Sequence record: OR513085.1
Direction: 5' to 3' (one strand)
DNA: 64,000 nt
This document shows positions 9,186 through 44,400 of the stretch, piece after piece. The translations under genes were made by a program, and so were the position numbers. Numbering within the stretch: the stretch's first letter is position 1; every line of letters starts with the position of its first letter. The notes below the pieces were generated by a model. That model had not been told where the DNA came from and made no database searches. It was given only the letters and a program-made list of their open reading frames with translations.

Positions 9186-9220
9186 AAAAAGCCTGAACGT
9201 TCGTAACGTTCAGGCTTTTT
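9186..9220 (+). terminator. Intrinsic terminator
   Basis: AAAAAGCCTGAACG / CGTTCAGGCTTTTT. Confidence 0.8.
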
Positions 9221-12147: not shown

Positions 12148-12396
12148 ATGAAAACATTTACATACTTTATTAATGAAGCTAAACGAAACGAAAATTTACG
12201 TAATGACATTTATGCTAAATTGACTGCAGGCTCATCTAAAGTACCGCTGACAGTTATACAAAGATTAACTGCAATGATACAAAATAAAAAAGTATCGTTG
12301 ACTGCAATTTTATCATTTGCTGAAAGTTTCATAAAAGACAAAGACTTACTTAATGAAATTGTTAGCATGCTAAATTCAAATTTCGTTAATGAATAA
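12148..12396 (+). CDS. Small prohead core/internal protein (position of T4 gp67/68)
   Basis: MKTFTYFINE|A leader; lies between portal and protease. Confidence 0.55.
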   Translation: MKTFTYFINEAKRNENLRNDIYAKLTAGSSKVPLTVIQRLTAMIQNKKVSLTAILSFAESFIKDKDLLNEIVSMLNSNFVNE

Positions 12397-25789: not shown

Positions 25790-25887
25790 ACCTACTAATT
25801 GGAATTTTTGGTTTTAGAATTGAAATAACCAACTGCGAATACGAGAATTTTTCTAACGAACAAAGACAAATCGACAATGAATTATAA
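25786..25887 (+). CDS. Small 33-aa protein not in the ORF track
   Basis: MNLLIGIFGFRIEITNCEYENFSNEQRQIDNEL; ATGA overlap upstream, 11-nt overlap downstream. Confidence 0.45.
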   Translation: MNLLIGIFGFRIEITNCEYENFSNEQRQIDNEL

Positions 25888-26587
25888 CGACATATCAATA
25901 CCAGTAGCTAATTTAAAGGCCGGTTGCTATGAAAATCACATAGGCAACAATATTTCGCCGAACGCTACGATAGCTGTGCTACTTTACGTTCTTTACGATA
26001 ACGAAGTTATAAACAAGCAATCATTACTTGACAGAACAAAAGTGTTACGTAACACACCTAAAGGGCTAGGCGAAATTAAAAACGATTCCGAATTGTACCA
26101 TTACTACGAAACACATAAATGCCCAATTACTGGCGAGTGGTATAGTGACACTAGGAATCATCACATTCTGAATGATGCTATTGACGAAAAAGTTGAATGG
26201 AATGTACTAAATAGCCTTAGGATTCCTTACGCAAAAATGGTTGAATTCCTTATGTTAATCTACGGAGTTTCAAAAAGTAAGGCTAAGGATTTGTTCAATA
26301 AACTATACATTCTGGATGCTTTGGTTGATTTTAGATCACTAGGAAGCCATACAGTTGAATGGTACAAAAGTCTTGGCTTTATTGACATCGAACCTAAAGA
26401 TTTTGAAATGCCTGACTACAAGCATAATTTCAAGTTTGCTTTTACTGGACCAGTTGATACTGATGATTTTGAAGCTAAATTTAACGATGAGAAACGTAAA
26501 GCCTACGCTAAGCTAGAACAACAAAAACGTTCGACATTAGGATTGCTAATGCAAACTCATGCAATTAACTTAAAAGCTACTTACTAA
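25877..26587 (+). CDS. Hypothetical protein
   Basis: 236-aa ORF. Confidence 0.7.
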   Translation: MNYNDISIPVANLKAGCYENHIGNNISPNATIAVLLYVLYDNEVINKQSLLDRTKVLRNTPKGLGEIKNDSELYHYYETHKCPITGEWYSDTRNHHILNDAIDEKVEWNVLNSLRIPYAKMVEFLMLIYGVSKSKAKDLFNKLYILDALVDFRSLGSHTVEWYKSLGFIDIEPKDFEMPDYKHNFKFAFTGPVDTDDFEAKFNDEKRKAYAKLEQQKRSTLGLLMQTHAINLKATY

Positions 26588-26589
26588 AC

Positions 26590-26883
26590 ATGGAACTAGA
26601 CATTTTACTTAGCAACATACTAGCCAACGCCAGCAAAACAGAACGTAACGCTTACGAAATGCTTAACGAAACTAACCAAACATTTAGCAACATAGGAACT
26701 TTCAAGCTGAAGAAATTTGACAAGCCATTCACAATAAAAGTTACTAAAGAACGTTGGTCAGGTAAGTTATGCTTTAGGAAGCAGGACAAAAACAAGTACA
26801 AAGGATTCACAGTTTCTACTGTACTTACAGACGATGAGCTATCAGAAATCTACGGAAAATACTCAGACAACGATATAGCATAA
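26590..26883 (+). CDS. Hypothetical protein
   Basis: 97-aa ORF. Confidence 0.65.
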   Translation: MELDILLSNILANASKTERNAYEMLNETNQTFSNIGTFKLKKFDKPFTIKVTKERWSGKLCFRKQDKNKYKGFTVSTVLTDDELSEIYGKYSDNDIA

Positions 26884-26916
26884 AAAATGCCAAGCATACT
26901 GTATGCTTGGCATTTT
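26884..26916. terminator. Bidirectional terminator between convergent genes
   Basis: Perfect 16-bp IR AAAATGCCAAGCATAC / GTATGCTTGGCATTTT. Confidence 0.8.
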
Positions 26917-26927
26917 GTTTTCTCTTT

Positions 26928-27155
26928 TTATTTCTTTGCAGATTCAAGTTTTTCAAGCTGGTCAGCTTTTATTTTCTTGTCTCCTTTTAACTTCTCCATT
27001 ATAGCTTTGTAAGTGATTGTTCCACCTACTGCAACAGTCGTCATTAGTGCAGTTGCTAAGTATTCAATTTGTTCTGGGCTTAATCCTGAAATTATGTCTG
27101 AAATTGATTCGTTAGCAAAAGATTGCTTAGGTCCTTGTTTTCTAAATGTACTCAT
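26928..27155 (-). CDS. Small late protein with FANE|S site and hydrophobic helix
   Basis: Occupies a + strand gap; late box TGTAAATA on the - strand at 27180-87; shares the bidirectional terminator. Confidence 0.65.
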   Translation of the reverse strand: MSTFRKQGPKQSFANESISDIISGLSPEQIEYLATALMTTVAVGGTITYKAIMEKLKGDKKIKADQLEKLESAKK

Positions 27156-27245
27156 TGTTGTAAGATGTTTATGTTGAATTATTTACACAACTTGCTAAAA
27201 GTTGTGAATGCTTCGCATATTAATGTAAAAGTTTTTGCAAAAATG

Positions 27246-27277
27246 TTTTACGATGTCAAATAAAAGTTATATATTTG
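27246..27277 (+). promoter_or_regulatory. Early host-type promoter
   Basis: TTTTA, 19 nt, TATATTTG. Confidence 0.6.
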
Positions 27278-27298
27278 TATTATACAAAAACAAACAAT

Positions 27299-27571
27299 AT
27301 GAACCAAATAAGCAAAACTGCTTTGGCTATAACTTTCGCAGTACTACTTTTCTTTGGGCCGTTAGGTTACAAGATTTACAAAGGCAATTTTCAGCCTAAA
27401 GAAAACTTTACAATTGAGTTAACTTATATTGATGGCTACGTTGAAACTAAAACGTACAACCTAAACAAAGACTCTGAGTTCTACGTACAAACATCCAAAG
27501 GTAGCTATAGCCTGCAAACGCAATACGTTGTAGTAGCTCCTGGTGTTATACGTTACAAACTAATTAAGTAG
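27299..27571 (+). CDS. Hypothetical membrane-anchored protein
   Basis: N-terminal TM TALAITFAVLLFFGPLGY. Confidence 0.6.
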   Translation: MNQISKTALAITFAVLLFFGPLGYKIYKGNFQPKENFTIELTYIDGYVETKTYNLNKDSEFYVQTSKGSYSLQTQYVVVAPGVIRYKLIK

Positions 27572-27601
27572 GAAAAGTTTTTGAAAATAGTTGCAAAAAC
27601 A

Positions 27602-27633
27602 TTTTCATAAGTCAAAAACTTTTCTTATATTTG
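27602..27633 (+). promoter_or_regulatory. Early host-type promoter
   Basis: TTTTCATAAGTC, 19 nt, TATATTTG. Confidence 0.7.
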
Positions 27634-27686
27634 TATTATACAAAATCAATAATTAACATTTATTAATCAAACAAATTCAAAACAAA

Positions 27687-28970
27687 ATGACAACAAACGT
27701 ACAAAACTTAGGAACTATTTTCGCAGATAAATTCAATGAAGTAATGGCTAACGAAGCTAATGTAACAAAAGCTTACCAAGTCATAGCTAAATTTTGTATA
27801 AGCCAAGCTAACCAGGCAGATGAAGATGACTCAGAAACTATAGCTTTCTGGAATGAAAAAGAAACTTATTGTATGGACAAAGCTAAATCAGGAGTTGCTA
27901 AAGTTGCAACGACAATCGAACGCTTCCAAAAGAACACTTCAAACTTCAAAACTGAATTTAAGTTTTCAAGTAAGGAGGAAAGAACAATTTACCAAAGATT
28001 CGTAGAAAACAAGGAAAACACTACAAACAAGTTAATGTACTACACAGTAACTGATGAAAACTTCAATTACAGAACTGAGTCTGGCATTTACTTCCACAAC
28101 ATGGTTAATGCAATTGTTGAGAGATTTAACGAAATTTCAAACTACGAATTTGCTATAGTTGACAAGGAGTTCTTAGTTAACAACGAATTTGCTATTGATA
28201 CTGAACTTGGTAGAAGATATGCATTCTATGTAGATACTGATGACTTCCATGCATCTACAAAAGAACAAGTAGCATCAGTTTATTCAAAAGTACATCCAGG
28301 ATGCAGAGTATTCGTTTCTTACGAAGCATTAGCCGAACATATCTCAACTTACATCAGATACAAAGCTATCTACATTCTAAGCGACCAGGCATTCAATGCT
28401 TTACGTTACTTAGTAGATTCAATTGAGGTAGTTAAATGCCCAAACCTTGATCTTTCAGAATTTGGTGATGATAACTTGGTAAGCCATGACTTTCAGGCAT
28501 ACGCAGAATTCCTAAGCTTCAGAAAATTCAATACTGTACATTACACAAATTCAGAAGTTGTAGAAGTAGAAGTTGAACAAAAACAAGAGTTCTTCTCTGA
28601 CTTTATCAGATTCAAATCTACAGGAAAGGCAGAGAAAAAGTCAGTAACAAAGGACATTACTTACGACCTAGTAACAATTTCTAAACCGGCATCAAAGGTA
28701 CCAGTTTACCGATTTGCTAAAAGAATGAAGCAAAATCCAGGTACTAGACAAATCCTGATTCAAAACATCCTATTGACATTGAACGAAAACTTACAATTGG
28801 AAAACATTGAAGTTATGCCAGAAGATTTTACGTTAAGCAACAACAAAGATTACGTTATGCATAGCCAACTTAACTCCATCATTACAATTGCTAACAGAGA
28901 TGCAGACAAATTCCATGCAGGAACGTTAGAAGCATTAACAAACATTTTGCAAATACAAATTAGAAAGTAG
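27687..28970 (+). CDS. Hypothetical early protein
   Basis: 427-aa ORF with its own promoter and terminator. Confidence 0.75.
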   Translation: MTTNVQNLGTIFADKFNEVMANEANVTKAYQVIAKFCISQANQADEDDSETIAFWNEKETYCMDKAKSGVAKVATTIERFQKNTSNFKTEFKFSSKEERTIYQRFVENKENTTNKLMYYTVTDENFNYRTESGIYFHNMVNAIVERFNEISNYEFAIVDKEFLVNNEFAIDTELGRRYAFYVDTDDFHASTKEQVASVYSKVHPGCRVFVSYEALAEHISTYIRYKAIYILSDQAFNALRYLVDSIEVVKCPNLDLSEFGDDNLVSHDFQAYAEFLSFRKFNTVHYTNSEVVEVEVEQKQEFFSDFIRFKSTGKAEKKSVTKDITYDLVTISKPASKVPVYRFAKRMKQNPGTRQILIQNILLTLNENLQLENIEVMPEDFTLSNNKDYVMHSQLNSIITIANRDADKFHAGTLEALTNILQIQIRK

Positions 28971-28999
28971 GATAATTTTTCATAGACATATAATTTTTG

Positions 29000-29032
29000 C
29001 CTGGGTAGTCTTTAAGATTGCCCAGGATTTTT
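29000..29032 (+). terminator. Intrinsic terminator
   Basis: CCTGGGTAGTC / GATTGCCCAGG + T run. Confidence 0.65.
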
Positions 29033-29051
29033 AAAACAAACTTAACAAACA

Positions 29052-29522
29052 ATGGAAACTATAACAGTCATAACAAGCCCAGTTCACAGAAGTATTTATG
29101 AAGTCAACATAGGCGTAAATAGCTACGACATTACTTATGTACAACAAAGCGGAACGTCAATACATAGAAACAAAGCTACAAATGATTTGTTGGAACTAAA
29201 TACTAACGATGAAGCTAAGCTAGAATTAGTTTGTGCGTACTTTAATGCCCTACGTAACTGGCAATTAGCATACATTAACGAAGACTATCTTACGTTTAAC
29301 ATTGGCAACTTATTAATTCCTGATACACTTAAGGAAAAGTTTATTGGCGAAGTACGTAAGCATACGCTAACTTCAATGTTTGGTACATTACAACTTATGG
29401 ATTCTATGAACATCAAAATTGAAGTTCCTCAATCAGAAGTTGTAGGCAGACCTTTGCTAAAATATGCTAAAGCTATCAACCACTACCACAACTACTGCAA
29501 ACAACAACTTAACAATGGATAA
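29052..29522 (+). CDS. Hypothetical protein
   Basis: 156-aa ORF. Confidence 0.65.
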   Translation: METITVITSPVHRSIYEVNIGVNSYDITYVQQSGTSIHRNKATNDLLELNTNDEAKLELVCAYFNALRNWQLAYINEDYLTFNIGNLLIPDTLKEKFIGEVRKHTLTSMFGTLQLMDSMNIKIEVPQSEVVGRPLLKYAKAINHYHNYCKQQLNNG

Positions 29523-30120
29523 ACAAAAACATACACCAAAGCTAATAGCTATTTTTGCTATAACTACTAACAACGTTATTGGTGACGTTAAGGATGGTCA
29601 GCATATCATGCCATGGCCTAGAATTAGCCAGGACATGAAAAGATTCAAGGCGCTAACTGATGGTCATGTTGTAGTAATGGGACGTAACACTTGGGATAGC
29701 CTAGGCTCCTATGCGCCATTACCAAATCGAACAAACATAATTGTTTCGCGTACGTTACGTTACACTGACGTTATGCATCACCCAAATACTTACGTTTTTG
29801 ATAGTATTGATGATGCTATAGCTTATGCTAAGGAAATTTGTGAGACTAATTTGCCTGAACTTGGTAGAAATGTTTACATCATGGGCGGCGGCCAAATATA
29901 CAGGCAGACTAAGGGCATTGTAGATCAGATTGAAGTTACTAATATTATAGCATGTCCTAATGTAGGTCCTGACACTGTAAAATTCAATTCATTCGAGGCA
30001 TACAAAGGATTTAAGCGTACAGAAACATCACCAGTATACAATATGACTGACAAAAGTACTGGTAAAAAGTTGGATTTTTATTTCTATACGGAGGTACGCG
30101 ATACCCAAAAATTGCCTTAA
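29515..30120 (+). CDS. folA: Dihydrofolate reductase
   Basis: AITTNNVIG, MPWPRISQDMKRFKALT, VVMGRNTWDSL, PLPNRTNIIVSR, IMGGGQIY. Confidence 0.95.
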   Translation: MDKQKHTPKLIAIFAITTNNVIGDVKDGQHIMPWPRISQDMKRFKALTDGHVVVMGRNTWDSLGSYAPLPNRTNIIVSRTLRYTDVMHHPNTYVFDSIDDAIAYAKEICETNLPELGRNVYIMGGGQIYRQTKGIVDQIEVTNIIACPNVGPDTVKFNSFEAYKGFKRTETSPVYNMTDKSTGKKLDFYFYTEVRDTQKLP

Positions 30121-30178
30121 ATTTTTGTACTTTAATATAACTTAACAAAATAATTTAAATACACAGATAAACACTACA

Positions 30179-30841
30179 ATGGCAAAAATCTTAAAAGAAA
30201 CTACAACAATTGACTTAGGCATAAAATATGCTGGCAAAGTATCAAAATCAATCACAGATACTTTCGCTGACCGACTTAACAACATTACAATCAATGCAAT
30301 CGTAACACAGTTTGCACATTCGCCAGAAGGTGCAAAAATTATGTTCATGGGTGTTGGCAAAAATTCATACCTTTCGCATAAACTTGCAGCTACTTGTCAG
30401 TCATTGAATATCAATGCAAACTACTTTGATTCTGTACATGCTATGCATGGTGACTTAGGCGCTTTACGTTCAGGTGATATTGTAATTGCGTTTTCAAAAT
30501 CTGGCAAAACTGCCGAGTTGCTTCACACTTTAGCTTACCTTAAAAAGCACAAAAAACATTTTGGTGTAACTACTGTAGGTGTTTTTGCATCAGATGATGA
30601 TTATAATTCTGAGGCGGTTACTTCAATGGAAATAACAAAAAACACAGACTACCAAATTTTGCTTAAATCATGCCAAGAATTGGACGACAACAAAACGGTA
30701 CCGACAACTTCAGCATTGGTTATGCAGGCAGTAGGCGACGTTATAGCATTACAAATTGCATCTAATAACGGCCTTACTACAGAACAATTTGGATTAACAC
30801 ACCCAGGCGGCTTAATTGGTGCAACACATAACAAAGACTAA
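30179..30841 (+). CDS. kdsD: Arabinose-5-phosphate isomerase (KdsD/GutQ SIS domain, no CBS)
   Basis: MGVGKN..KLAAT, AMHGDLG, SKSGKTAEL, VPTTS, GDVIA, FGLTHPGGLIG. Confidence 0.85.
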   Translation: MAKILKETTTIDLGIKYAGKVSKSITDTFADRLNNITINAIVTQFAHSPEGAKIMFMGVGKNSYLSHKLAATCQSLNINANYFDSVHAMHGDLGALRSGDIVIAFSKSGKTAELLHTLAYLKKHKKHFGVTTVGVFASDDDYNSEAVTSMEITKNTDYQILLKSCQELDDNKTVPTTSALVMQAVGDVIALQIASNNGLTTEQFGLTHPGGLIGATHNKD

Positions 30842-31087
30842 TGTGGCCTATAAAAGAAAACCTTAATTGCAAAAGTTAGGCATCATTTTGCACAAACCGA
30901 TCATTATGATGCCGAACTTGCTAAGTTATGCCTAGCACATATTAAACCACTTTGGGATAAAGAGCTTTGGCAAGAATGTAAAGATGAAGTCTACAAATTT
31001 TATGAAGGCTTAGACATCTCGATAGAAAAGGACATGATCCTTGCAAACCTAAATAAACGAATAAGATTAAAAACTACACATGACTAA
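30841..31087 (+). pseudogene. Frameshifted ORF of about 81 aa (MWPIKEN / LIAKVRHHF...)
   Basis: ATG overlaps the kdsD stop; one extra base near 30861-65; the shifted frame ends with an ATGACTAA overlap on the next gene. Confidence 0.5.
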
Positions 31088-31328
31088 ACAATACACCGTA
31101 GCGTATATGTCATTCTTTGACAATGACTTAAGACTTGCAGTAGTCGAAGCTACATCAGAACTTGAAGCTGCAAAGAAATTTTTGTATGACATAACTGATG
31201 ACAAATACAAACAAGGAGAACTTGATGAACAGGCTAGCGAAAACTATCCAAAAGACATGGAAGCTTTGAAAGAATATCATTTTAATGCTGACGCAGTTAT
31301 TAACGTTATCGAAATTCCGACTAAATAG
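31080..31328 (+). CDS. Hypothetical protein
   Basis: 82-aa ORF. Confidence 0.65.
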   Translation: MTKQYTVAYMSFFDNDLRLAVVEATSELEAAKKFLYDITDDKYKQGELDEQASENYPKDMEALKEYHFNADAVINVIEIPTK

Positions 31329-31393
31329 TCTAACAAATGCCGGTATTACTGCCGGCATTTGTGTATTTTAGCATTAAATTTAAAAATCTACAC

Positions 31394-33154
31394 ATGACAA
31401 ATCAAAAATTTGAAAATCTTATAATTGTAGCATCTGGTGCAGGTACTAGAATGGCTGAATATACAATGAACAACACAATTCCAAAGCTTCTTGTTAGTCT
31501 TGGAAACGAAACAATCTGGTCGTCTATGCTTAAAAACATTGACCGAGTTGCCGAATATGTTTTTGTTATTGCCAATAGTAAGCATATTCCAATGTTGCAA
31601 GAGGTTGCAAAACTTACATATCCTGAACAGGCTGAAAACATAATTTATGTTGATTACGATGAACAAGATGGTACAGCAAACACGATTGCTAAAACAGTTT
31701 CTGATAGAATGATTGATGGTACTACTTTGATAGTTTGGTCTGACATTCTTGAAGCTTCTACAGAATCTTTGTTACCGTTAACCAGTTCGTTATCTAAGCT
31801 TAAGGAATATGATGGCGATAATTTACAAGTATGTGTTATAGCAGACAGACAGCCAAGACACCGATTTAAAATTGATGGTTCTGTTATAGAAGAAGTTGCT
31901 GATGCTTCAGGTAACATTGTAGGCGCTTATGCTACTAACGAAATTGCAAAATTTGGAGCATGGTCAGGTTCTCATGGAAGAGGTTTAAGAGATTTTAAAT
32001 TTACTGGTGAAGTTCTAAGGCATAACCAGGACTTTATTTCGTTAGTCAAAGTTATGCATGAACGCGATGATTTACGTTCAATCAAAACTTTCTATGGTGA
32101 CTTTATTGATCTTGGTGATTCTGCAAAATACCAGGCATACATGGCTTCCAAGGAAATAAAAACTCGCTATTTCAACAAGCTAGAAATTGGTACTGACAGA
32201 GTTACTAAAACTGCCACTAATGCTAAAGGCAGAGCAGTTATGGCTAATGAGGCAAGTTTTTATATGTTCATGGAAAAGTCCGGATTTGACCAAATGTTTG
32301 CAGGAGTTATTGGAATGATTGGCGATAGTATTGAAGATGATATGTCTACTTTAGTACTTGAAAAGCTTGACAAAACAGTACACCAGCATATTACAGAACA
32401 TGTAGCTAATGTAAAGAATGTAGATAAACATGCATATACTGCAAGATCGTATGCTGCAAGGATAGCTTACAAAAACTTCAAGGAGTTTATGAAGCCTTTG
32501 CATACAGCAAATCCTGATCATTTTTTACCACAGTCGGATTTTTCAGATGATGTATTAACTAATGCTGCATGGAAGGAATACATTGAAGTAACTAGGTCAA
32601 GGTACGAATCAATCAAAGGATTGCTTTCAGCATCTGACATTATCAGGTTTAATGGCGAAGTTGTGCCAAGCTTTGACTATGTAATGGCTAAGCTAGAAGA
32701 CTACTTACGAAATTCAAACGTACTAAATTTAGGGCTTATCCATGGTGATACTAACACCGCAAATGTTATGATGGATTCCAAAGGCGCTATGAAGCTTATT
32801 GACCCTAGAGGAGTTTTTGGAGATATGCAATATGCAGGTGATACTAATTATGACCTAGCAAAATTCCTTTACGGCTTAACTGGCTACACTGACTTTAATG
32901 ATTCTACAGACTTCAAAGTTAAAAAGGATGGCACTTCGTTATATTGCGAATTATTCAACAAATTGCCATCACCTTGGTATGTTTGCCAGGATAACGAAGG
33001 TAACGACGACATTAATGCGGTTATCTTAGTAGGTCTTATTTGGCTTAAGCTTCCTGCTTACATTATCAACAATCCACTAAAATCGTTAGTAGCTTACTAC
33101 AAAGGCTTGACGTTGCTAAACAAAGCATTGAACGAATACGAATTTACAAGATAA
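31394..33154 (+). CDS. Sugar-nucleotidyltransferase fused to APH/choline-kinase-like phosphotransferase
   Basis: IIVASGAGTRM..PKLLVSLG; EQDGTA; C-terminal IHGDTNTANV, KLIDPRGVFG, YDLAK. Confidence 0.85.
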   Translation: MTNQKFENLIIVASGAGTRMAEYTMNNTIPKLLVSLGNETIWSSMLKNIDRVAEYVFVIANSKHIPMLQEVAKLTYPEQAENIIYVDYDEQDGTANTIAKTVSDRMIDGTTLIVWSDILEASTESLLPLTSSLSKLKEYDGDNLQVCVIADRQPRHRFKIDGSVIEEVADASGNIVGAYATNEIAKFGAWSGSHGRGLRDFKFTGEVLRHNQDFISLVKVMHERDDLRSIKTFYGDFIDLGDSAKYQAYMASKEIKTRYFNKLEIGTDRVTKTATNAKGRAVMANEASFYMFMEKSGFDQMFAGVIGMIGDSIEDDMSTLVLEKLDKTVHQHITEHVANVKNVDKHAYTARSYAARIAYKNFKEFMKPLHTANPDHFLPQSDFSDDVLTNAAWKEYIEVTRSRYESIKGLLSASDIIRFNGEVVPSFDYVMAKLEDYLRNSNVLNLGLIHGDTNTANVMMDSKGAMKLIDPRGVFGDMQYAGDTNYDLAKFLYGLTGYTDFNDSTDFKVKKDGTSLYCELFNKLPSPWYVCQDNEGNDDINAVILVGLIWLKLPAYIINNPLKSLVAYYKGLTLLNKALNEYEFTR

Positions 33155-33161
33155 AGCTTTG

Positions 33162-33194
33162 AAGCCAGAACATTCGGAACGTTCTGGCTTTTTT
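33162..33194 (+). terminator. Intrinsic terminator; late box TATACATA at 33196-33203
   Basis: AAGCCAGAAC / GTTCTGGCTTTTTT. Confidence 0.75.
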
Positions 33195-33230
33195 GTATAC
33201 ATAACAATATAACTAAACAAACATTACGTA

Positions 33231-36200
33231 ATGGCAAAATTTACAAAACTTGCTGGAGAAGTTGCTAAGCTTTACGACGGTAAAGTTACTGGCAGCATTA
33301 TCAAATTTGACAGTGAGGACGACTTATTTAAAGCAGCTGATGAAATTGCAGATCAGTTCGCATTTACAATGGACCAGGATAAACTGACCATCGAGTTCCT
33401 TAACGAAAACATTGACATAAAATTCCTTAAGCAATTTGCTTCTGCAATGGGAGTTTCTCAATTCACTAACGAATCAGTTGACAAACTTACGAAGCAAATA
33501 GGAATTAGCCTTAACGAGGCTGAAGTTGATACCGTTACTACGTTACTAAACAAAGTAGAAAGTCCTGAATATCCTGACGTTGCTAAAGTTGCGGCTGACC
33601 CTATGCAACAAATTGCTGATACTATTACAAACTCTGCAGCTACAGGTGCTACGTTAGATATTGTAGACGGTGAAAATTCTGCTAAACAAATTGTTATCAG
33701 AACTGATGATAAACTTATTGCAGCTACACCAACTGACATCGTAGCAATCAACGAATCAGCTTACGTACACTATGGAATGCATCAGCTTAACGAAAATGAA
33801 TACAATGCACTTAAAGCTTTGGAAGATGTTAATGCTAGACGTAGATTCCTTACAAGCATGGGTATCATGGACTTAGATGCCGATTCAATTTCAAAGAACT
33901 TGGAGTTGCTTAAACCTCTTCATCCTGACATGGATGCTAATGGGTTGCTTCCGCTAAATGAAGCTAACGTAACAATTATTAACGTAAGCAATGCTTTTGC
34001 TAACGAAGCCAGTAACGCTCTAGCTAATGTAGCTAATCTTTATGCTAAGTTTGTTAATGAAAACAATTCATGGACAGTTAAGTCTTACGATGCTGCTGAT
34101 GTTAAAGCTACTTTAGTTTCTGCAGGAATTCCTGCAAACGAAATTTTTATGAATGAGTCTAAAGACATGGACATCTACAACTTACAATCTAAAGTTGCAT
34201 TATTCTGTAAAAAGTCAGGACTTTCAGGAGCCGATGTACAAAAAGCTTTACTACTTGTTAACCTAGAAGCTAAAGAAGCTAAACCTAATTTTAGCAAATA
34301 CGTAAACATAAAGGACTCAATGCTAAACGAATCTGCCGATGCACAGGATGCTGAGGAAATGTTTGAACGTAAAAACAAAGCATATGCTAAAATGATTAGC
34401 AAAGACGGCCTAGCTGCTGAGCTTACTGAATTCCTAGCTTCTTTTGGAGAAAATGCTAAAGTTCCTGAGGATGGTTTAGTTGGTGAGTATGGTGAACTTT
34501 CTGCAGACTTGCAAGAAGGAATCAACAAATTCATGGAAGAGCGTGGTTACTTTGCTAATGAAAGTACTAATTGGACGCTTGATAAAAAATCAAAAGGTGA
34601 ATATAACGAATGGCATATTACTGGCGATGCACTAAACAAAGTAAAATCACGTGATGAAATTTTTGATGTATTACCTGAACTTAAAGGAATCTATAAAACA
34701 CTAATTGATTCTAAAAATGGACTAAAGTACAGCGACCGTGTTAAAGTTGGCAGCATTACAGTTACTGGTGATGATATGGGCGATATTTTAAATTTTCTTA
34801 AAGGTAACGGTTCACTAAATGAATCTGTTGATGCTAACGAGGAAATTGAAAGTGTATACAAATTTGAATCTATAAAAGACATTGAGGTTGCTGCTGCAGC
34901 TAAAGGTTATGTTTGCAAAGGACATTCAGGACAATCCGAATCTTCTGACAAGTATAAATTTGATATTCTAGCTAAAGGTGGCAAAAAATGTGCAATGGGT
35001 ATTTATGACAAAACTAAAAAAATTGCAATACTGGATGTTAACGATGAACATAAAGGTACCGCTTTACTAGAAGCTAAAATGATTAATGAAAGTTTCACTA
35101 ATGAATCTGCAGGCATTGAAAACTTATTCGCATCTATGGGAGCTACATTCAACAAAGAGTTACGTACAGATGGCACTTACAAATACCAAGTTACTGGCTT
35201 AGTAGGTTATGCTAACGAGGCTACTGAAGTACCAAACACTGCCGACCTCATCGCATTTGAAATTCTTAAATTGTACGGAAACTTCAAAGAAGCTACAAGG
35301 CTATCACGTTCAGTAGTTAAACAAGCGTTACGTAATGTTATTGATACATTGAAAGTTGATGACTCTTGGTTAACTGACGAATCTAAATTTATTTCGCTTT
35401 TTGAAGCTATTGATACTATGAGAGTAGACTTTGGCCCAATTGACGAATCTTCAAATTTGCCAACTAAAACAAGCGAATTAAAAATTAACGCATATGTAGC
35501 ATTTAAAAATAATGGTGCAAGAATATTTGGTAAAATTTCAGGCATAAAAGGTGACGAAGTTTCAGTAAAACTAACAAACGGCAAACAAATGCTAGTTGAT
35601 GCTAAAGATGTAATTTTAGGTCTTGAAAATTACGTTAATGAATCAATACCTCAGCAAGAAGCTAAGATTGCCGGAACTAAAGCTAAGATTGCTGAAATTA
35701 AATCAGAGGCTAAGGCTGCTTCGGCTAACGCATCTTCCAAAATTTCCACTGAAAAGGCTAAGTTAGTAAATGCCAGAGCTACTTTGAAAAACCTTAAAAA
35801 GTCAAAGTCGTTAAATGAGTCTAAAGCGCCTCAAGGAGTTGGAGGAAATGTTTATGTAGTACCAAACTCGTCTTTCCAAAATCCTTGGCTAACACATAAG
35901 CTTGAAACTTCACTAGGTATGCGAGGATATCAATTTGCTAACCAATTCAAGTCTGACATCGTAAACGCCGACATTATGGTTGACTATTATGTTGCAAAAG
36001 ACGACAAAGTTAGTGAAGTTTGTATGGACATGGAAGGTACTTCAAAACCTCAAAAGACTGAAATTATAGCTACACCAGTTTCAATTTACATTAACGAAAA
36101 CAATGTACTTTGTTTCAATGAAAATCCAATTCCTACAGAAATTGCAGAAAACGGGCAGATTGGTTCAGTAGCACAATTCAAGGAATATGCTAAATACATT

Positions 36201-36365
36201 CTGAGTGGTGGCATTCCTGGTGCAGATTCTGCATGCGAAGAGGGCCCAGTTACTCAGGAAGATATTGCAAAAATTGACAGTATTTGTGATGCTTGCGGTG
36301 AAAACTATGGTGCTATGATGGGTAAATTTGATGATTATCTTAGCCAGAAAGCTACTGTTAACTAA
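33231..36365 (+). CDS. 1044-aa late protein with about 18 xNE|S/A/N sites; probable internal head polyprotein
   Basis: Late promoter; motif density matches the protease scaffold. Confidence 0.7.
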   Translation: MAKFTKLAGEVAKLYDGKVTGSIIKFDSEDDLFKAADEIADQFAFTMDQDKLTIEFLNENIDIKFLKQFASAMGVSQFTNESVDKLTKQIGISLNEAEVDTVTTLLNKVESPEYPDVAKVAADPMQQIADTITNSAATGATLDIVDGENSAKQIVIRTDDKLIAATPTDIVAINESAYVHYGMHQLNENEYNALKALEDVNARRRFLTSMGIMDLDADSISKNLELLKPLHPDMDANGLLPLNEANVTIINVSNAFANEASNALANVANLYAKFVNENNSWTVKSYDAADVKATLVSAGIPANEIFMNESKDMDIYNLQSKVALFCKKSGLSGADVQKALLLVNLEAKEAKPNFSKYVNIKDSMLNESADAQDAEEMFERKNKAYAKMISKDGLAAELTEFLASFGENAKVPEDGLVGEYGELSADLQEGINKFMEERGYFANESTNWTLDKKSKGEYNEWHITGDALNKVKSRDEIFDVLPELKGIYKTLIDSKNGLKYSDRVKVGSITVTGDDMGDILNFLKGNGSLNESVDANEEIESVYKFESIKDIEVAAAAKGYVCKGHSGQSESSDKYKFDILAKGGKKCAMGIYDKTKKIAILDVNDEHKGTALLEAKMINESFTNESAGIENLFASMGATFNKELRTDGTYKYQVTGLVGYANEATEVPNTADLIAFEILKLYGNFKEATRLSRSVVKQALRNVIDTLKVDDSWLTDESKFISLFEAIDTMRVDFGPIDESSNLPTKTSELKINAYVAFKNNGARIFGKISGIKGDEVSVKLTNGKQMLVDAKDVILGLENYVNESIPQQEAKIAGTKAKIAEIKSEAKAASANASSKISTEKAKLVNARATLKNLKKSKSLNESKAPQGVGGNVYVVPNSSFQNPWLTHKLETSLGMRGYQFANQFKSDIVNADIMVDYYVAKDDKVSEVCMDMEGTSKPQKTEIIATPVSIYINENNVLCFNENPIPTEIAENGQIGSVAQFKEYAKYILSGGIPGADSACEEGPVTQEDIAKIDSICDACGENYGAMMGKFDDYLSQKATVN

Positions 36366-36575
36366 CATAACGTTCTGCTAACATAACGTAACAATTACAA
36401 AAGCCTGAACTAACATAACGTTCAGGCTTTTAAAACGTTCTACAATATTTTGCAAAAGCATTACTTACGTTAAACTATCGTTACGTTAAGCTTACGTTAC
36501 GTTAAACAACAAATTACGTTCGACTACATTTTGCAAAAGCTTACGTTACGTTCTACAACATTTAGCAAAATAATA
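36366..36575. repeat. ACGT-rich intergenic repeat element related to 10056-10240, containing a terminator (36399-36431)
   Basis: TAACATAACGT x3; shared CTACATTTTGCAAAAGC and CAACAAATTACGTT. Confidence 0.75.
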
Positions 36576-36598: not shown

Positions 36599-37900
36599 AT
36601 GTCAAATTACATAAATGAAGCAATGTCACTTAATGGCAAAGTGGCATATAACGAAGGCCAAGTAGCTTTCAAGACTAACACTGCATTCTCCATCATACAA
36701 CATTTAGCTTGGCAATACAACGACACTTACGTTGGTAGCGTTAAGACAGTTAAGCTACCTTACGAAATAAAAGCCAAAGCAGTTAAGCAACTTTCGTTAA
36801 ATGGAACGCCTTGCATTTTCAGAGAACTTGGCGAGCTTGAAACATTCAAATCTGTAGGTGAATTTGACTTCCTACAAATGGTTTATATGTTCACTGATAA
36901 ACCTGAATTACTACAATACATCGATCAATCTTACGTAGAATTTGGTGTTTTCTTACAAAATGGAAATTGGTGGTTTGTCGAAAAGCAAAACAATGCTAAG
37001 CTTTTTGAAGAGATTGACGAACTTAACGTAGGCTATTACAACCTAGACTTACCAACTGCTAAGCTACCAAAAACAATTTCAATGATTGATTCTGTTAGCC
37101 AAGGCAAAACCGCATTACGTACGTACGCAAAGGATAACGCTCTAACTGATTTTGTTATGTCAACGTTTACTACTCCAATGGCAGTGCAACTTAATGCGTA
37201 TCCTTCAATAGCTAAATTTGCATCGTTTGTACCAGATGCTAACGAATTTACTAATCAACTAATTGCGGTAGTTTTAAAAGAAGAAACTGAAGTTCCTTTC
37301 TTGCTAGACAAAACTTCTGAGCATATGATATTGTTAGTTTGTGTAGAGGGCGTAAACAAATGGTTCAAAATTTCGGCATCCGACGTTCTTGCAGCAATTA
37401 GTAAAAACCAGCAAAACTTTTTTGTAGATAGCGTTAAGAACTCACTAGAATCTAGTAGACTTAATGCAGGACTAAAATCAGAGGACTTATATGCTGCAAT
37501 TAAACGTTTACGTGCAGTAGCATTATTCAACAATTTGCTACAAGATACAGGCTTCTCAGGCTACTATTACGTTAAGAACAACTCACATACAATAAAGGCT
37601 GATGCATTTAACAAATTCAGTGTTAATTCTCAAGGCTATGTTAATCAGATTTTTAACGACAAGGATTTAGTACTTTACAAAGACACTATAATTTCATATA
37701 GCGCCGATCTTAAAGCTGGCATAGTAGTTATTGCATATCCTGGATTAAACCATACTTGCTACATAACTTCAATTGACCAACTACCAGAATTGCAAAATGA
37801 ATTCCTGGATGGCAATGCTAAATTGGACACCGTAGTTTCAATTTCCGACATTTACTTCAAGGACAACGGTTCCAAGAAGGGCGACAGTGGTAAAAAATAA
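36599..37900 (+). CDS. Late protein with MSNYINE|A leader
   Basis: 433-aa ORF; late box AATACATA 36572-79. Confidence 0.65.
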   Translation: MSNYINEAMSLNGKVAYNEGQVAFKTNTAFSIIQHLAWQYNDTYVGSVKTVKLPYEIKAKAVKQLSLNGTPCIFRELGELETFKSVGEFDFLQMVYMFTDKPELLQYIDQSYVEFGVFLQNGNWWFVEKQNNAKLFEEIDELNVGYYNLDLPTAKLPKTISMIDSVSQGKTALRTYAKDNALTDFVMSTFTTPMAVQLNAYPSIAKFASFVPDANEFTNQLIAVVLKEETEVPFLLDKTSEHMILLVCVEGVNKWFKISASDVLAAISKNQQNFFVDSVKNSLESSRLNAGLKSEDLYAAIKRLRAVALFNNLLQDTGFSGYYYVKNNSHTIKADAFNKFSVNSQGYVNQIFNDKDLVLYKDTIISYSADLKAGIVVIAYPGLNHTCYITSIDQLPELQNEFLDGNAKLDTVVSISDIYFKDNGSKKGDSGKK

Positions 37901-38220: not shown

Positions 38221-39066
38221 ATGCTAAAAACATTTACAAATATGACGTCCGCGGATAACAACGCATTTATAAATGAATGTGTTATCGCAGCTAAGAAATT
38301 CGATGGCCACTTTATTATTGCAAAAAATCGTGACCGTCCGTATGACCCATCATTAACGCTAATCCACGAAATTATTGATGGCATTGAAACTGTGTGGATG
38401 GTTGACGAAGACACTGACTGGTCCGAAGGCATGAATGAATTTGGCATTAGCATAGTTAACTCGGCACTTATGGTTGCTAGAGACGAGGCTGAAAAGAAAA
38501 CTGCCAAAAAAGAAGGCAAAAAGTTTTTGAAAGACGGTACTATTATTCGTGAGGCTTTAAAACATTCTGATGTCGAAAAGATCATCGACATTATAATAAG
38601 CAAAGACGGCGGGCTTAAAGGTCATACTTTTGTTTGTACTAAGGATGAACTTTATGCAGTCGAATTAACGTCCAAGCATAATCCTGAAGTTCAAAATATT
38701 TCTGACTCAGACAATGAAGTTCGTACAAATCACGGAATTAAGCATACTTCTGCAGGCTACCAAAAAGGTTTATCATTCAAGTCATCTGCAATTCGTAAAA
38801 ATTCTGCAATTGCTCAGATTAGCAAAGCTAACACACCTGAGGAGGTTCTACAAAGAATGCGTAAACGTCTTTATAAAAAGGACTCTATGCTTAACATGAA
38901 GCGTGATACTAAAAAGCTTTGGACATCTTCGCAACTTATGATGGACCCAACTAACTTAACTATTAAGCTAGTAGCGTTTTCTGACAAAACTCAGGATTTG
39001 AAAATAGACAACAGATTGCCAGAAGGTTATGTTCCTAAAATAAAACTTGAATTGCAAGTCATTTAA
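38221..39066 (+). CDS. Ntn-hydrolase (C45/C59-like Cys nucleophile) with 19-aa propeptide ending FINE
   Basis: C20-VIAA..IIAKNRDR; WSEGMNEFGISIVNSAL; VRTNH; late box TATACATA 38163-70. Confidence 0.75.
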   Translation: MLKTFTNMTSADNNAFINECVIAAKKFDGHFIIAKNRDRPYDPSLTLIHEIIDGIETVWMVDEDTDWSEGMNEFGISIVNSALMVARDEAEKKTAKKEGKKFLKDGTIIREALKHSDVEKIIDIIISKDGGLKGHTFVCTKDELYAVELTSKHNPEVQNISDSDNEVRTNHGIKHTSAGYQKGLSFKSSAIRKNSAIAQISKANTPEEVLQRMRKRLYKKDSMLNMKRDTKKLWTSSQLMMDPTNLTIKLVAFSDKTQDLKIDNRLPEGYVPKIKLELQVI

Positions 39067-39106: not shown

Positions 39107-39811
39107 ATGAACTTTAACAAAAACGAAGCCTACGGAATTGGAGGCGAGAATCTAACGTACAAAGGCAGCACGTCAACAGCCAATAAAATATATCATGCAT
39201 TCGTTAACGAATCTGGAGGTAATATTTTCTTAACTGCTGAGCAGATTAACGAAGCTACTAACGGTTCAGCCGACGAAGAAGTTTATAATCAATGGGCTGA
39301 GCTATTACTTCAGCATATCGGAGTAGACAGAGCTAAAAAATACTTGAATGCTAACGATATTAACAAAGAACTTAAGGCTATGCTTGATGCTAACCATGAC
39401 ATGGAGTCTGACATTCTTTACGATAAAGCAATGAATGCTAAACTTATTGCTGCAGTTAGCAGACGTAGAAAGGCTGCAGGATATGTAAACGAATCTACAG
39501 AAAGCTTTGATTCCAAAGATACTGTAGCATTCATCAGCAAAACGTTTCCTGGAATTTCAACAAAATTCTTACCTGCTAACTTCATGACTAAAATGAAGTA
39601 CGAAAACAGTAATGTTATTGCTGACAAAGAAATGGGAATTTTCTCAGCAGTTTTAGCAGACTGTGCATCTAAACTTACTGTTAGAACTTTCGGAGTTAAT
39701 GAAGTAGAGGTATTCTTTGACTTAAACTACGAACTTAAAAATCGTAGAAGCAATGGAATGTCAGTTTCTTATACATCATCCGACGGTGGTAAGAACTTCA
39801 AAATTCAATAA
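39107..39811 (+). CDS. Probable internal head protein (FVNES, QINEA, YVNES)
   Basis: ATG 39107; three motif sites. Confidence 0.6.
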   Translation: MNFNKNEAYGIGGENLTYKGSTSTANKIYHAFVNESGGNIFLTAEQINEATNGSADEEVYNQWAELLLQHIGVDRAKKYLNANDINKELKAMLDANHDMESDILYDKAMNAKLIAAVSRRRKAAGYVNESTESFDSKDTVAFISKTFPGISTKFLPANFMTKMKYENSNVIADKEMGIFSAVLADCASKLTVRTFGVNEVEVFFDLNYELKNRRSNGMSVSYTSSDGGKNFKIQ

Positions 39812-41417: not shown

Positions 41418-44400
41418 ATGCTATACAAATACACAACACTCCCGGCAGATACTTCAGCGTTACCAGTAGGCGCTTTGATTCTTACAAAGAGTGGTGACGG
41501 TTACATTCTTGACAACAATAAAGTTGCAGTACCATTCAAAGGTAACGTACTTACTCCTGCATTAATTAACAGCTGGAATGACGCTGCTACTAAAGCTCAC
41601 GTACATTCTAACAAAGATACACTGGACCTTATTAGCTTGCTTTCAATTCAAAAATGGGATGAAGCTTATTCACTAAGACATACGCATTCTAACCTTGCAA
41701 CGTTAGAAACTATAACGCCTGCAAAAATTGCTGAGTGGAATAGTGCAATGAAATTTATAAAAACATTGTCTACTGAGGACTTAGATACTGTAACAGTTAA
41801 TGGAATCTACACACAGCCATCTAATGCTAATGCAACAACCGCAAATCACTATCCTATTGGTTATGCAGGAACTATAACAGTGCTAGGTAATGGTGGCAAT
41901 CACATTGTTCAGGAATATGTTAGACTTGCATCAGGTGCTACAGGTAACACTAAATATCGCAGATACTATTATGTTAGTTCAGGATGGTCTAATTGGCAAA
42001 AATCTTTAGATGATCGTGACATTACTCAGGCAATGATTGATTCTTGGAATCTTGCAGTGTCTTGGGGTAACCATGCTAATGCAGGTTATATGACTCAAAC
42101 GACTTCGGATGCTAGGTATTTAAGACTAATTGGTGGAACGTTAACTGGTGATGTTGCTGTAACTGGAGGCAAAACATTTACATTCACTGCTGCCGATGGC
42201 AAAACTTATGAAGTTAATGGCTCAGGAACTAAACATACTTCAGGTGCTAATGTGTTTTCATCAAATTTTGTAGATTCTAACACTTGGGGAATTACTCACG
42301 GAACTCAGCAAATTTTGACTAAAGACATAGCCAACAATGTTGTAAAAATTGGTAATGACACTTCACCTGCACAATTAAGAATAAAGTCTGCAGTATCTCC
42401 AAATCCAACTTCTACTGTACTTACAAACCCATCCGGTGACGTTTCAATAGTTCCAGCTTTACCGCTATTTACTAACTACCTTGAGCCTAGCTTATTAGCA
42501 AATGCTGATAGCGTAACAACAAAAGGAATTGAAGTTAACTACATTGACGCATCTACACTAAACAAACCGACAACATTAGCTAATGGAACGTTAATGACAC
42601 TAAACATTAACAACTCAGGAGGCTCGCAATTAGCAATATCAACTTCAACAGACCCAGCAGTTTATTTTAGAACTAGAACAAATTCAAATTTTGGAGGATG
42701 GACTAGGTTAGCTACAACTAACGATCTTACTGCATTAGGCCAGGACTACATTAGCAAAACTACTAACGACTTACCTGCTAACTCGGCTTGGTACGTTAAG
42801 AAAGGAACATCTGGAATTGGTGTAGTTGATACTAACTTTATAGGATTATTTGACGCTACTACAAAGGCTTATGTTACTGCAGGCGTACTAAAAATTGTTA
42901 ACGGTGGTATACAAACTGATGCAGCTTCAGTTATTGGAGGAACTACTACATTCAATGCTAACGCTACGTTCAACTCAGCTAACGTTACGTTTGCTAATGG
43001 CGCTAACAGCTCAACGTTAGCTATGGCTGGCACTAGATTAGCTATAGCATCAGGTAATGCCGGCAAAACTGGAAACATAATTGTTGATGGTGATTCGCCA
43101 ATTATTGCAAGACCTGAAACTGTAGTTAATTCTGACACTGTATTAGCAGGATTACCTGTAGGTACTCATGGTGCAGGTACATCCATTGGCGGTGTTAACG
43201 CATCCTTTATAACTTTTGGTAGCCCAGTTACTGGAACTAAAACAAACTTGATAGGTTCTACTACAGGCTTCCTTAAATTTAGATCATCATCAGGCGCTAC
43301 ATTTTCAGATTGGAAATCGTTAGTTGCTTTTGAAGACTTAACGTTAGCTACTACAGATACTTCTGTTAGCTTAACATTCAATGGCATTACAAAGACTGCA
43401 CCATTAACTACCGGAACGTTAACAAACGTAACGTACACCAACAATTGGACATTGCCATTCGGTACAACTAAAGGTTATATTGACATTGAAATGCCTACAT
43501 CTACATCAGGTGACATTATACTTACGTTAGTAGGTTATTGGGGCAATGAAAGACAATCAGGTTCAGTTAAATATCAAATTGGATTTGGTTCAAACACTAC
43601 ACAAATATACGATCAATATGCTAACATAGTTTCCGTTACTGCAGGCCAAGTTTTACTAGATAGTTATGCAGTTAACTTATCCGCAGCAATCGTGTTAGTT
43701 AATGCTAAACCTTGTTTACGTATTTGGTGCATGCGTGACGGAATTTCGCAAACTAACACAGTTAGAGCATTCATGCAAATTAAAACTAGACAAGGTACTG
43801 CATTTACTTCGTTGAACGATGTTAAGCCTCTAGCTTTCGTAGCCGAGCCTAACATTCCAACATTTATGGACCTCGATCAAGCACCTAAGTCAGTTTCATT
43901 TAACCAAATTGCAGTTAGATCATCTGCGCAAAACGATGATAATGCTGCAATTAAGCTTAAAACTGCTAGAATTTCAACATCACCAGCAAATGCAAATGGC
44001 ATTCGTGTAGTAGGTACATCAAATACTGCAGCAGGTTATCTTTATTTAGGTTCAGGTAACAACAGACTGGGTGTTGACGACGGTACTGCAAATTCACCTT
44101 TGCTTTATAATGCATCACCAGTAGTTACAAGAGACTATGCTATAGCAAATGGTTTTATATTTTCAGAAGGCAATGCTATAGGTACTATAAATGGAGTTTC
44201 TGGAGAAATTGGTCTACCTGCTAACTCATTTAAGCCAACAAAATCAGGATTCTACCGAGCTAATGGTGAAAATAACTGGGGTGCATTGTCAATGGCGATA
44301 GCACATCCTGCTAGAAGTGATGGAGGCTTTATGGCTGGTATAGCTTTTGATTATTCAGGAGCCAATGCATACTTAACAGGTAATGATTCTACAGGAGCCA

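Follow-up and report, generated by a model that had tools for sequence, protein, structure and literature searches.

A motif-punctuated polyprotein gene in a Chryseobacterium jumbo phage

Chryseobacterium phage MA9V-2 is a lytic jumbo myovirus whose host is C. indologenes MA9 (PMC13414440). We analysed the final 64 kb of its 218.5-kb record OR513085.1, hereafter the window (window position 1 is record position 154,540), with attention to one open reading frame (ORF), MA9V2_236, referred to here as ORF236. Its translation is 100% identical to that of the record, where the protein is annotated as hypothetical. It holds 23 NE dipeptides, 14 of them in the form NE[SA], where 1.07 would be expected from the ORF's own composition; placing a cut (marked ↓) behind each of these 14 divides the chain after amino acids (aa) 81, 96, 175, 244, 259, 309, 367, 444, 531, 620, 625, 663, 804 and 863. 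Five further positions read hydrophobic-x-NE↓N and may be weak or decayed sites. The original prediction had described a polyprotein divided by about 18 xNE sites: all 14 sites that it listed are found in ORF236 in their places, and the count is a fair one because the five NE↓N positions come on top of the 14.

The head genes of MA9V-2 are T4-like, with Pfam matches to Portal_T4 (190.9 bits), Peptidase_S77 (27.3 bits) and Gp23 (49.5 bits). ORF236 lies 17 kb downstream of this portal-protease-capsid cluster, not between the protease and capsid genes as a gp22 would; the T4 scaffold-gene slot is filled in MA9V-2 by an extension of about 1000 aa on the protease ORF. Between the capsid cluster and ORF236 lies a block of sugar, lipopolysaccharide and nucleotide genes (24878-33154), and the LpxD-like acyltransferase, KpsF/GutQ-like isomerase, DHFR and GlmU-like genes of this block are the upstream neighbours of ORF236.

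ORF236 is a separate unit with its own promoter-like element and terminator-like hairpins (Table 1). The hairpins belong to a family, AAGCCWGAAC-N9-GTTCWGGCTT, that has three copies in the window against 0 expected by chance; two, at 33162-33190 and 36401-36429, flank ORF236, the third lies at 9189-9217, and all three sit just past a gene end. The octamer TATA[C/A]ATA occurs 30-58 nucleotides (nt) upstream of the protease ORF, the capsid gene, the ORF at 38221 and the fibre gene at 41418, and of its 21 copies across the genome, 10 stand 28-58 nt ahead of an ORF start, where about 1.3 would be expected. We take the octamer to resemble the T4 late promoter, and by that likeness it would itself be a late promoter. 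For the late promoter of its own that had been predicted for ORF236 there is a late-promoter-like element of this octamer class in front of the gene. On the 3' side of ORF236 (36362-36570), three copies of CTAACATAACGT and three of ACGTTCTACAAYATTTNGCAAAA precede the promoter-like ATACATACTAAAAC of the next gene, ORF237.

Table 1. Coordinates of ORF236, its modules, its expression signals and related features (window positions unless a record or locus is named)
Feature	Position	Strand	Remarks
Portal (Portal_T4)	10369-12078		Pfam match
Protease ORF, 1207 aa (S77)	12440-16063		First ~180 aa match Peptidase_S77 (gp21 family)
Capsid protein, Gp23 family	16279-18000		Gp23 match begins at aa 109
Terminator-like hairpin of upstream GlmU-like gene	33162..33194	+	10-bp stem, 9-nt loop, T run
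Late-promoter-like TATACATA	33196..33203	+	35 nt before ORF236 ATG
Coding sequence (CDS) of polyprotein MA9V2_236 (ORF236), 1044 aa	33231..36365	+	Intact ATG to stop, stop codon included
N-terminal backbone, aa 1-244	33231..33962	+	Pieces 1-81, 15-aa linker 82-96, 97-175, 176-244
Divergent segment, aa 245-309	33963..34157	+	15-aa linker and 50-aa module
Modules aa 310-367 and 368-444	34158..34562	+	phmmer against relative P0003
MA9V-2-specific cassette, aa 445-531, 87 aa	34563..34823	+	Exactly NE↓S to NE↓S; orphan
Modules aa 532-620 and 626-663	34824..35219	+	Split by 5-aa duplicated site 621-625; MA9V-1 only
Helical module, aa 664-739	35220..35447	+	Also in MA9V-1 and P0003; terminates at DE↓S junction
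MA9V-2-specific cassette, aa 740-804, 65 aa	35448..35642	+	Small beta-barrel-like (SH3-like); missing in MA9V-1
Basic K/A-rich helix, aa 805-863	35643..35819	+	Isoelectric point (pI) 10.1, charge +7.5; conserved in P0003
C-terminal module F1, aa 864-1044	35820..36362	+	Family-defining piece
Terminator-like hairpin after ORF236 stop	36401..36431	+	Same hairpin family as 33162
Leader-bearing proteins, window	8358-9164, 12148-12396, 61862-62161, 63311-63910
Leader-bearing proteins, record positions	20104, 40608 (- strand), 83518, 140538		Loci L061-L063
Shorter leader forms	ORF237 36599-37900; ORF240 39107-39811
MA9V2_239 homologues	L003:9378-10217; L004:6067-6900; L069:2970-3803
F1b-ended acidic family	L005-L060, L070-L149		e.g. 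L025:8633-10171, L043:8081-10171

The NE motif is most likely a prohead protease site

Scanning the pieces of the record separately, unjoined (224 ORFs, 64,862 aa), returned 72 NE[SA], 30 of which lie inside two ORFs: 16 in the protease ORF and 14 in ORF236 (genome-wide Poisson p 1.7e-16 and 1.1e-14, respectively). Among 38 MA9V-2 sites, P4 is F or Y in 18, P3 is I, L, V or A in 33, P2 is N and P1 is E, and P1' is S in 26, A in 10 and G in 2; the full motif is [F/Y/W]-[I/L/V/A]-N-E↓[S/A], and 66 sites of metagenomic relatives give an identical logo. Given an aliphatic P3 and S or A at P1', enrichment at P2 is limited to Asn (16.5-fold per residue; a count of 29, versus 12 in a sevenfold larger background sequence). 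Site codons vary (AAC/AAT, GAA/GAG, TCA/TCT/AGT/GCT/GCC), and because synonymous codons differ from site to site the signal lies, and selection acts, at the peptide level; by the same token the idea that the sites are DNA repeats is ruled out.

The capsid protein carries two motif sites, after aa 24 and 62, N-terminal to its Gp23 match, and this region upstream of the Gp23 profile is the place where a T4-type propeptide is removed. In the protease ORF the S77 domain stops at a motif site (after aa 179), beyond which come about 1000 residues with a DUF5856 module and 17 further sites. No fewer than eight other MA9V-2 proteins open with an N-terminal leader of 8-10 residues, M-K-x-F-F-x-F-[I/V]-N-E↓[S/A], and downstream of ORF236 the conserved leaders of ORF237, ORF239 and ORF240 end in the motif. 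One of the leader-bearing proteins is annotated as a bactofilin-like cytoskeletal protein. The capsid-targeting sequences of T4 are N-terminal leaders of 10-20 residues that are removed by gp21 (PMC5694885, PMC3012670); the MA9V-2 leaders look like these, and by analogy would predict a set of head-internal proteins.

Prohead proteases of both the T4 type and the giant phages cut after Glu (PMC5694885). Because the motif is common to the protease ORF, the N-terminus of the capsid protein and the short leaders, we consider it most likely that it is the prohead-protease site and that ORF236 is a head-internal substrate. This distribution agrees with the original prediction, which had treated the motif as a cleavage site and had pointed to a heptapeptide common to ORF236 (aa 173-179) and the protease ORF (aa 177-183), which is indeed there. 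Paralogy of the two ORFs was rejected, their alignment being confined to site contexts.

Two of the downstream neighbours deserve separate mention. MA9V2_239 (ORF239, 38221-39066) is AAT/Ntn-hydrolase-like (Pfam AAT, 21.9 bits, just below the cut-off). In this protein and its homologues a leader of about 15-19 aa ends in F-[I/V]-N-E and a conserved Cys follows at once; since a cut at NE would expose an N-terminal nucleophile, the enzyme might be activated only inside the capsid. MA9V2_240 (ORF240) is a third site-enriched protein, with 4 NE[SA] (p 1.5e-5), and its homologue at L003:10226-11248 combines a full leader with an SH3-like module and with two modules that are also present in P0011, one of the relatives described below.

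Related phages gain, lose and exchange complete modules

Searched exhaustively with phmmer, 1.84 billion representative proteins yielded only 11 relatives of ORF236, and a word-indexed search of 5.8 billion proteins found three. Among GenBank phages only MA9V-1 and MA9V-2 match ORF236 or its C-terminal module F1; no F1 relatives were found among 185,579 reference genomes, and scans with the conserved neighbour ORF237 found no further complete loci. All relatives carry the same motif, at 0.9-2.1 sites per 100 aa. Three loci (L003, L004 and L069) share the gene order GlmU-like gene, polyprotein, ORF237 homologue, a gene of about 75 aa and AAT-like gene; the syntenic neighbours are 41-69% identical, and the polyprotein runs from 647 to more than 1057 aa. 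A complete 422-aa version (P0005, locus L068, on a 105-kb contig) consists of N-terminal modules, one unknown module, F1 and one further module. Distant relatives have in common only the modules of aa 1-244 and aa 864-1044, and even P0003 keeps 66% identity over the N-terminal ~60 aa.

MA9V-1 and MA9V-2 (90% identity) differ by three indels in ORF236, at aa 445-531, 621-625 and 740-804. The last of these spans a DE↓S junction to an NE↓S cut, and aa 621-625 is a duplicated site. Every large indel between the two phages runs from cut site to cut site; under random placement, both ends of the aa 445-531 or the aa 740-804 indel would fall on cuts with p about 1e-3 each. A single extra cassette of 133 aa in the MA9V-1 copy of the protease ORF (L065:8502-12545) is likewise cut-to-cut. 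The aa 445-531 cassette is missing in P0003 as well as in MA9V-1, and at the aa 740-804 junction only the microhomology GAATC(A/T) is in common.

Other parts of the chain have their own histories. The backbone (aa 1-244), which is the part best conserved in distant relatives (families F2 and F3 also occur in P0003-P0006), has a ratio of nonsynonymous to synonymous divergence (dN/dS) of 0.07 between MA9V-1 and MA9V-2. The segment that follows, aa 245-309, is 47.5% identical to MA9V-1 between flanks of 91-98%, with a saturated dS of 2.2 and a dN of 0.445, and MA9V-1 is without two of its sites; to judge from these values, it looks like an allele replacement. The order of aa 310-367 and 368-444 is probably reversed in P0003, on a signal of 24-26 bits that came from phmmer only and was not recovered by BLASTP, with an alignment across nearly the full module. 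The dN/dS is 0.02 for aa 532-620, 0.16 for aa 626-663 and 0.01 for aa 664-739. Apart from the basic helix and the barrel-like aa 740-804, the remaining modules are acidic.

We split 19 carrier proteins at their sites and clustered the resulting fragments. Modules recur across carriers at 32-116 bits, and F1 itself is found at the C-terminus, in mid-chain or near the N-terminus, with differing neighbours. MA9V-2 has the DUF5856 module in its protease ORF, but P0010 has it immediately before F1 (95 bits); another module precedes F1 in L069, follows it in P0010 and stands near the start in L004 (81-90 bits). The two modules that the L003 homologue of ORF240 shares with the F1-bearing P0011 match at 116 and 32 bits. 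The ORF237 homologue of L004 is longer by 141 residues at its N-terminus, and these form two motif-ended modules ahead of the conserved leader site.

The cut-to-cut indels and the recurrence of modules in other carrier genes and positions make the modules separable cassettes, as had been proposed, and among related phages whole cassettes are gained, lost and swapped. The description of the pieces as unrelated mini-domains holds only in part. The two MA9V-2-specific modules are orphans without a detectable source: no free-standing homologues or genome paralogues of the aa 445-531 and 740-804 cassettes were found. No homology was detectable between the SH3-like modules of three different carriers.

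All modules common to MA9V-1 and MA9V-2 are under purifying selection, with dN/dS of 0.01-0.20 (for comparison, portal 0.03, capsid protein 0.04 and GlmU-like gene 0.13). The capsid protein is nearly unchanged between the two phages (dN 0.005), though MA9V-1 is without two ORF236 cassettes. Because the dN/dS values are low, the modules do not look like filler, yet because two of them are missing beside a near-identical capsid protein, the cassettes look functional but dispensable for assembly.

F1 ends in a tag shared with acidic, mostly marine proteins

The last ~55 aa of F1, here F1b, are predicted to form three helices with a predicted local distance difference test score (pLDDT) of 68-92, and are the sole part that AlphaFold modelled confidently. 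Related F1b elements stand at the end of extremely acidic ORFs of 260-700 aa at 56 loci of IMG/VR and over 120 loci of metagenomes, most of them marine. In the eight sequences inspected an x-E↓A/K junction stands before F1b, and several open with a leader ending in I-N-E-S or I-T-E-S. One F1b locus is T4-like, as gp32- and UvsW-like genes adjoin it. The carriers at L008 and L043 contain a phrog_1987-like module, which in L043 has [V/I/L]-T-E↓[S/A] sites on both sides; the phrog_1987 family is probably free-standing, since its profile is only 128 positions long. F1b, the N-terminal domain or both would, we suggest, anchor the chain to the core or shell as it assembles. Among cultured GenBank phages the F1b tag occurs only in MA9V-1 and MA9V-2.

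Searches for module function and fold

Searches of Pfam, PHROGs, NCBIfam and PDB sequences with the whole of ORF236 and with ten separate pieces returned no family of known function, no sequence relationship to the T4 internal proteins IPI, IPII, IPIII or Alt, and no embedded peptidase, MuF or portal anchor domain. Two modules had been given a shape in the original prediction. The basic K/A helix is readily identified as aa 805-863; the SH3/KOW-like barrel corresponds to aa 740-804, where SH3-like, Tudor-like and HAS-barrel Pfam matches converge on a small beta-barrel and four strands are predicted, but the matches are sub-threshold (best E 9.5e-5, 22.6 bits against a cut-off of 27) and the model is of low confidence. 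In the 337-aa module (about aa 174-510) of P0012, which is the positional orthologue of ORF236 at L004:18-3191, a short motif raised the suspicion of a ParB/sulfiredoxin-type domain, which Pfam and PDB did not confirm.

AlphaFold modelling of the whole chain (3 sequences) gave a pLDDT of 40.7, unusable for fold assignment, and that of F1 (7 sequences) 55.9. The low-confidence whole-chain model consists of mixed alpha/beta units of 50-180 aa, with long helices at aa 791-864. Foldseek, run with F1 on PDB and BFVD, reached no better E than 0.4, which is meaningless.

Retained cargo or expelled core

We propose the following course of events. Transcription from the late promoter would yield a single 116-kDa chain, which the conserved end modules (aa 1-244 and/or F1, whose last three helices are the widespread C-terminal tag) would build into the prohead core. 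The active protease would then cut after the E of the motif, releasing about a dozen proteins of 38-181 aa and linker peptides of 5-15 aa. Between the sites lie independent cassettes that, as the comparisons show, are inserted, deleted, replaced and moved between carriers with assembly undisturbed, and it would follow that any in-frame insert between two sites rides into the capsid. Late expression, prohead incorporation, cutting and cassette evolution are, taken jointly, quite probable. In a last and speculative step the folded modules would stay in the DNA-filled head like the T4 internal proteins while the linkers are lost, and the retained modules would act in the virion or after ejection. 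We are evenly divided on whether at least some modules are retained; the first four steps with this last one added come out even or a shade below; and the reading of ORF236 as a late, head-internal polyprotein cut by the phage's own S77 prohead protease, its modules retained, is one that we hold in balance.

What speaks for retention, speculatively, is the size of the modules, the combination of purifying selection with dispensability, and the T4 precedent of diverse passengers with a common targeting signal. The small T4 internal proteins have a size range that covers the ORF236 modules of 50-180 aa. The original prediction had spoken of a cargo concatemer and, as a possibility, of injected effectors or anti-defence proteins. 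The part of it that concerns architecture is supported by the motif-bounded cassettes, the modules prepended in L004 and the marine phrog_1987 module between sites; the effector and anti-defence part is speculative, and no module matches a family of known function. Several points weigh against the proposed course of events. ORF236 has a net charge of about -43 and a pI of 4.8, closer to the T4 scaffold and core than to basic DNA-binding internal proteins. It is without a short N-terminal leader, its first sites coming after aa 59 and 81. The Peptidase_S77 match of the protease is barely above threshold (27.3 versus a cut-off of 27 bits). No recognised effector, enzyme or anti-defence domain was found in its modules with Pfam, PHROGs, NCBIfam or PDB, and the models are too poor (pLDDT 40.7 and 55.9) to reveal independent folds. 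Cleavage at the NE sites is a prediction from sequence. Finally, in T4, phiKZ and SPN3US multiple cuts serve clearance (PMC5694885, PMC10052503).

Some of these points lead to an alternative that we regard as distinctly possible without being probable, namely that ORF236 is a scaffold- or core-like analogue of T4 gp22, gp67 and gp68 or of the giant-phage propeptides, which builds or sizes the large prohead and whose pieces leave before packaging; its dense sites would serve chopping for exit, and at most F1 would stay. The acidity of the protein fits this, as do the many sites, which recall T4 gp22, the long predicted helices at aa 791-864, and the fact that F1b ends extremely acidic, low-complexity, scaffold-like proteins of marine T4-like phages, always after a site. 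However, a scaffold would not readily account for cassettes of 87 and 65 aa that differ despite a capsid dN of 0.005 while the common modules are under purifying selection. Many modules are modelled, at low confidence, as mixed alpha/beta units rather than coiled coil; the gene is 17 kb from the head cluster, with the scaffold slot occupied by the extension of the protease ORF; and F1 lies mid-chain in relatives, with other modules after it.

It is very unlikely that xNE[S/A] is no protease site at all but a glycosylation-type sequon or a structural repeat at linker ends, with ORF236 an intact single chain. N-E-S does fit the pattern N-x-S/T, and cleavage is predicted; a sequon, however, disallows the A or G that stands at P1' in about a quarter of the sites. 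Nor would a sequon be expected where the capsid propeptide is removed and at the ends of 8-10-aa leaders, concentrated in the ORF of an S77 protease, or directly before a conserved Cys in the AAT/Ntn-hydrolase-like neighbour, and P1 E with an aliphatic P3 agrees with the habit of T4-type and giant-phage prohead proteases to cut after Glu (PMC5694885). Least likely of all is a non-virion late protein, a cytoplasmic or cell-envelope factor in keeping with the LpxD-like, KpsF/GutQ-like, DHFR and GlmU-like genes upstream, whose motif enrichment would stem from common ancestry with the protease ORF, as there is no real paralogy outside site contexts, ORF236 is a separate unit with its own terminator and promoter, and the leaders of ORF237, ORF239 and ORF240 end in the motif.

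The polyprotein with retained modules can be extended to a plug-in system, in which an in-frame segment placed between sites or ahead of a leader site enters the capsid, is freed there as a small protein by the prohead protease and is delivered with the DNA. We put this forward as rather unlikely. That at least three carrier genes (the protease ORF, ORF236 and ORF240) work in this way is a similarly tentative idea, and it seems doubtful, though conceivable, that these Bacteroidota jumbo phages, and phages related to them, maintain a concatenated and fast-shuffled store of accessory or anti-defence proteins for injection.

Relation to known systems

The nearest parallel is with the internal proteins of T4 (IPI-III and Alt, cut by gp21), which are highly diverse passengers with only a targeting and cleavage signal in common (PMC3012670, PMC5694885). 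MA9V-2 resembles this system in that its head genes are T4-like and its protease is S77, in that the predicted cuts fall behind Glu with P3 aliphatic, and in that several of its proteins have short N-terminal leaders. It differs in that ORF236 strings many passengers in one chain, where T4 has one leader per gene, and in a motif with a fixed Asn at P2 and an aromatic P4; ORF236 moreover has no short leader, is made of mostly acidic modules and has no sequence similarity to the T4 proteins in our searches. T4 gp22, gp67 and gp68 are acidic core proteins of the prohead interior that are multiply cut and whose pieces are expelled (PMC5694885). ORF236, acidic and with 14 strong sites, is like gp22 in this, but it is four times as long, lies outside the head cluster, matches no family of this kind and has beta-rich modules and presence/absence cassettes.

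In phiKZ, 201phi2-1 and SPN3US, also jumbo myoviruses with a gp21-related protease, Glu cuts, several cuts per substrate and many head-internal proteins (PMC10052503, PMC5694885), the proteases are of the S80 type and cut at A/S/G-x-E, whereas that of MA9V-2 is S77 and its sites have I/L/V/A at P3 and always N at P2. There, the cuts clear an N-terminal propeptide and a single mature C-terminal protein remains. As for the site-bounded cassettes, we know of no description of such shuffling in those three phages.

Polyvalent proteins of phages and conjugative elements (Iyer et al. 2017) are thought to be packaged with DNA and released proteolytically (PMC5512222). Many unrelated domains per polypeptide and mosaic, fast-changing architectures are features in common (PMC5512222). 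Polyvalent proteins differ in that effector domains can be recognised in them and a peptidase or MuF/portal anchor is usually built in, none of which was found in ORF236: where several effector or enzymatic domains would be expected, only one sub-threshold SH3-like match was obtained across the whole chain. Also, the enzyme that cuts ORF236 would be a separate protein, the prohead protease, acting in trans on a short linear motif. With the shell-binding tags of herpesvirus and P22-type scaffolds there is, as analogy only, the likeness of a small conserved C-terminal helical element after a maturation site on a variable protein; no sequence or fold match was returned for F1, and binding of F1b to shell or core is pure inference.

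A gp21-type protease, capsid-targeting leaders, multiply cut head proteins and polyvalent proteins are all already known. A full-text search of the literature for polyproteins and prohead protease returned only the polyvalent-protein paper (PMC5512222) and unrelated work, and it found no earlier description of a head protein made of shuffled cassettes bounded by prohead-protease sites. If the modules are retained and delivered, the arrangement would let a phage load its capsid with cargo, and vary that cargo, by compact genetic means: a new passenger would need only in-frame insertion between two short sites, with no promoter or leader of its own. This would help to explain how jumbo phages build up many small internal proteins, and would point to a pool of orphan proteins of 50-180 aa, possibly acting at the first moments of infection. 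The cleavage motif would be a simple rule for predicting head-internal proteins in a little-studied clade of T4-like phages of Bacteroidota and their marine relatives, and the system, should the plug-in reading be true, would correspond in polyprotein form to the internal-protein loci of T4. Were the pieces expelled instead, the fixed P2 Asn and a scaffold-like protein whose cassettes evolve from cut to cut would still inform the specificity of prohead proteases.

Other features of the window

A second class of upstream motif, AATAGTTGC ... TTTTCA ... TATATTTG, precedes the ORF starts at 18129, 21285, 27687, 54548 and 59479. Its final part resembles the Bacteroidota -7 element, and the class may serve the host polymerase as an early or middle promoter. 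A 135-aa protein encoded at 2676-3083 has a sole match, to sigma-70 region 2, at a sub-threshold 20.6 bits; as a gp55-like late sigma factor it is a candidate reader of the TATA[C/A]ATA promoters.

Annotation divides the family-B DNA polymerase into two CDSs, and three genes, one of the TnpB family, lie between these (L064, record 149314-155537; window 9-998). An 822-aa protein with CHAP-like and phage-lysozyme domains (5146-7614) adjoins a head-completion gene, and a 2367-aa fibre protein (41418-48521) ends in a C-terminal Peptidase_S74 chaperone domain.

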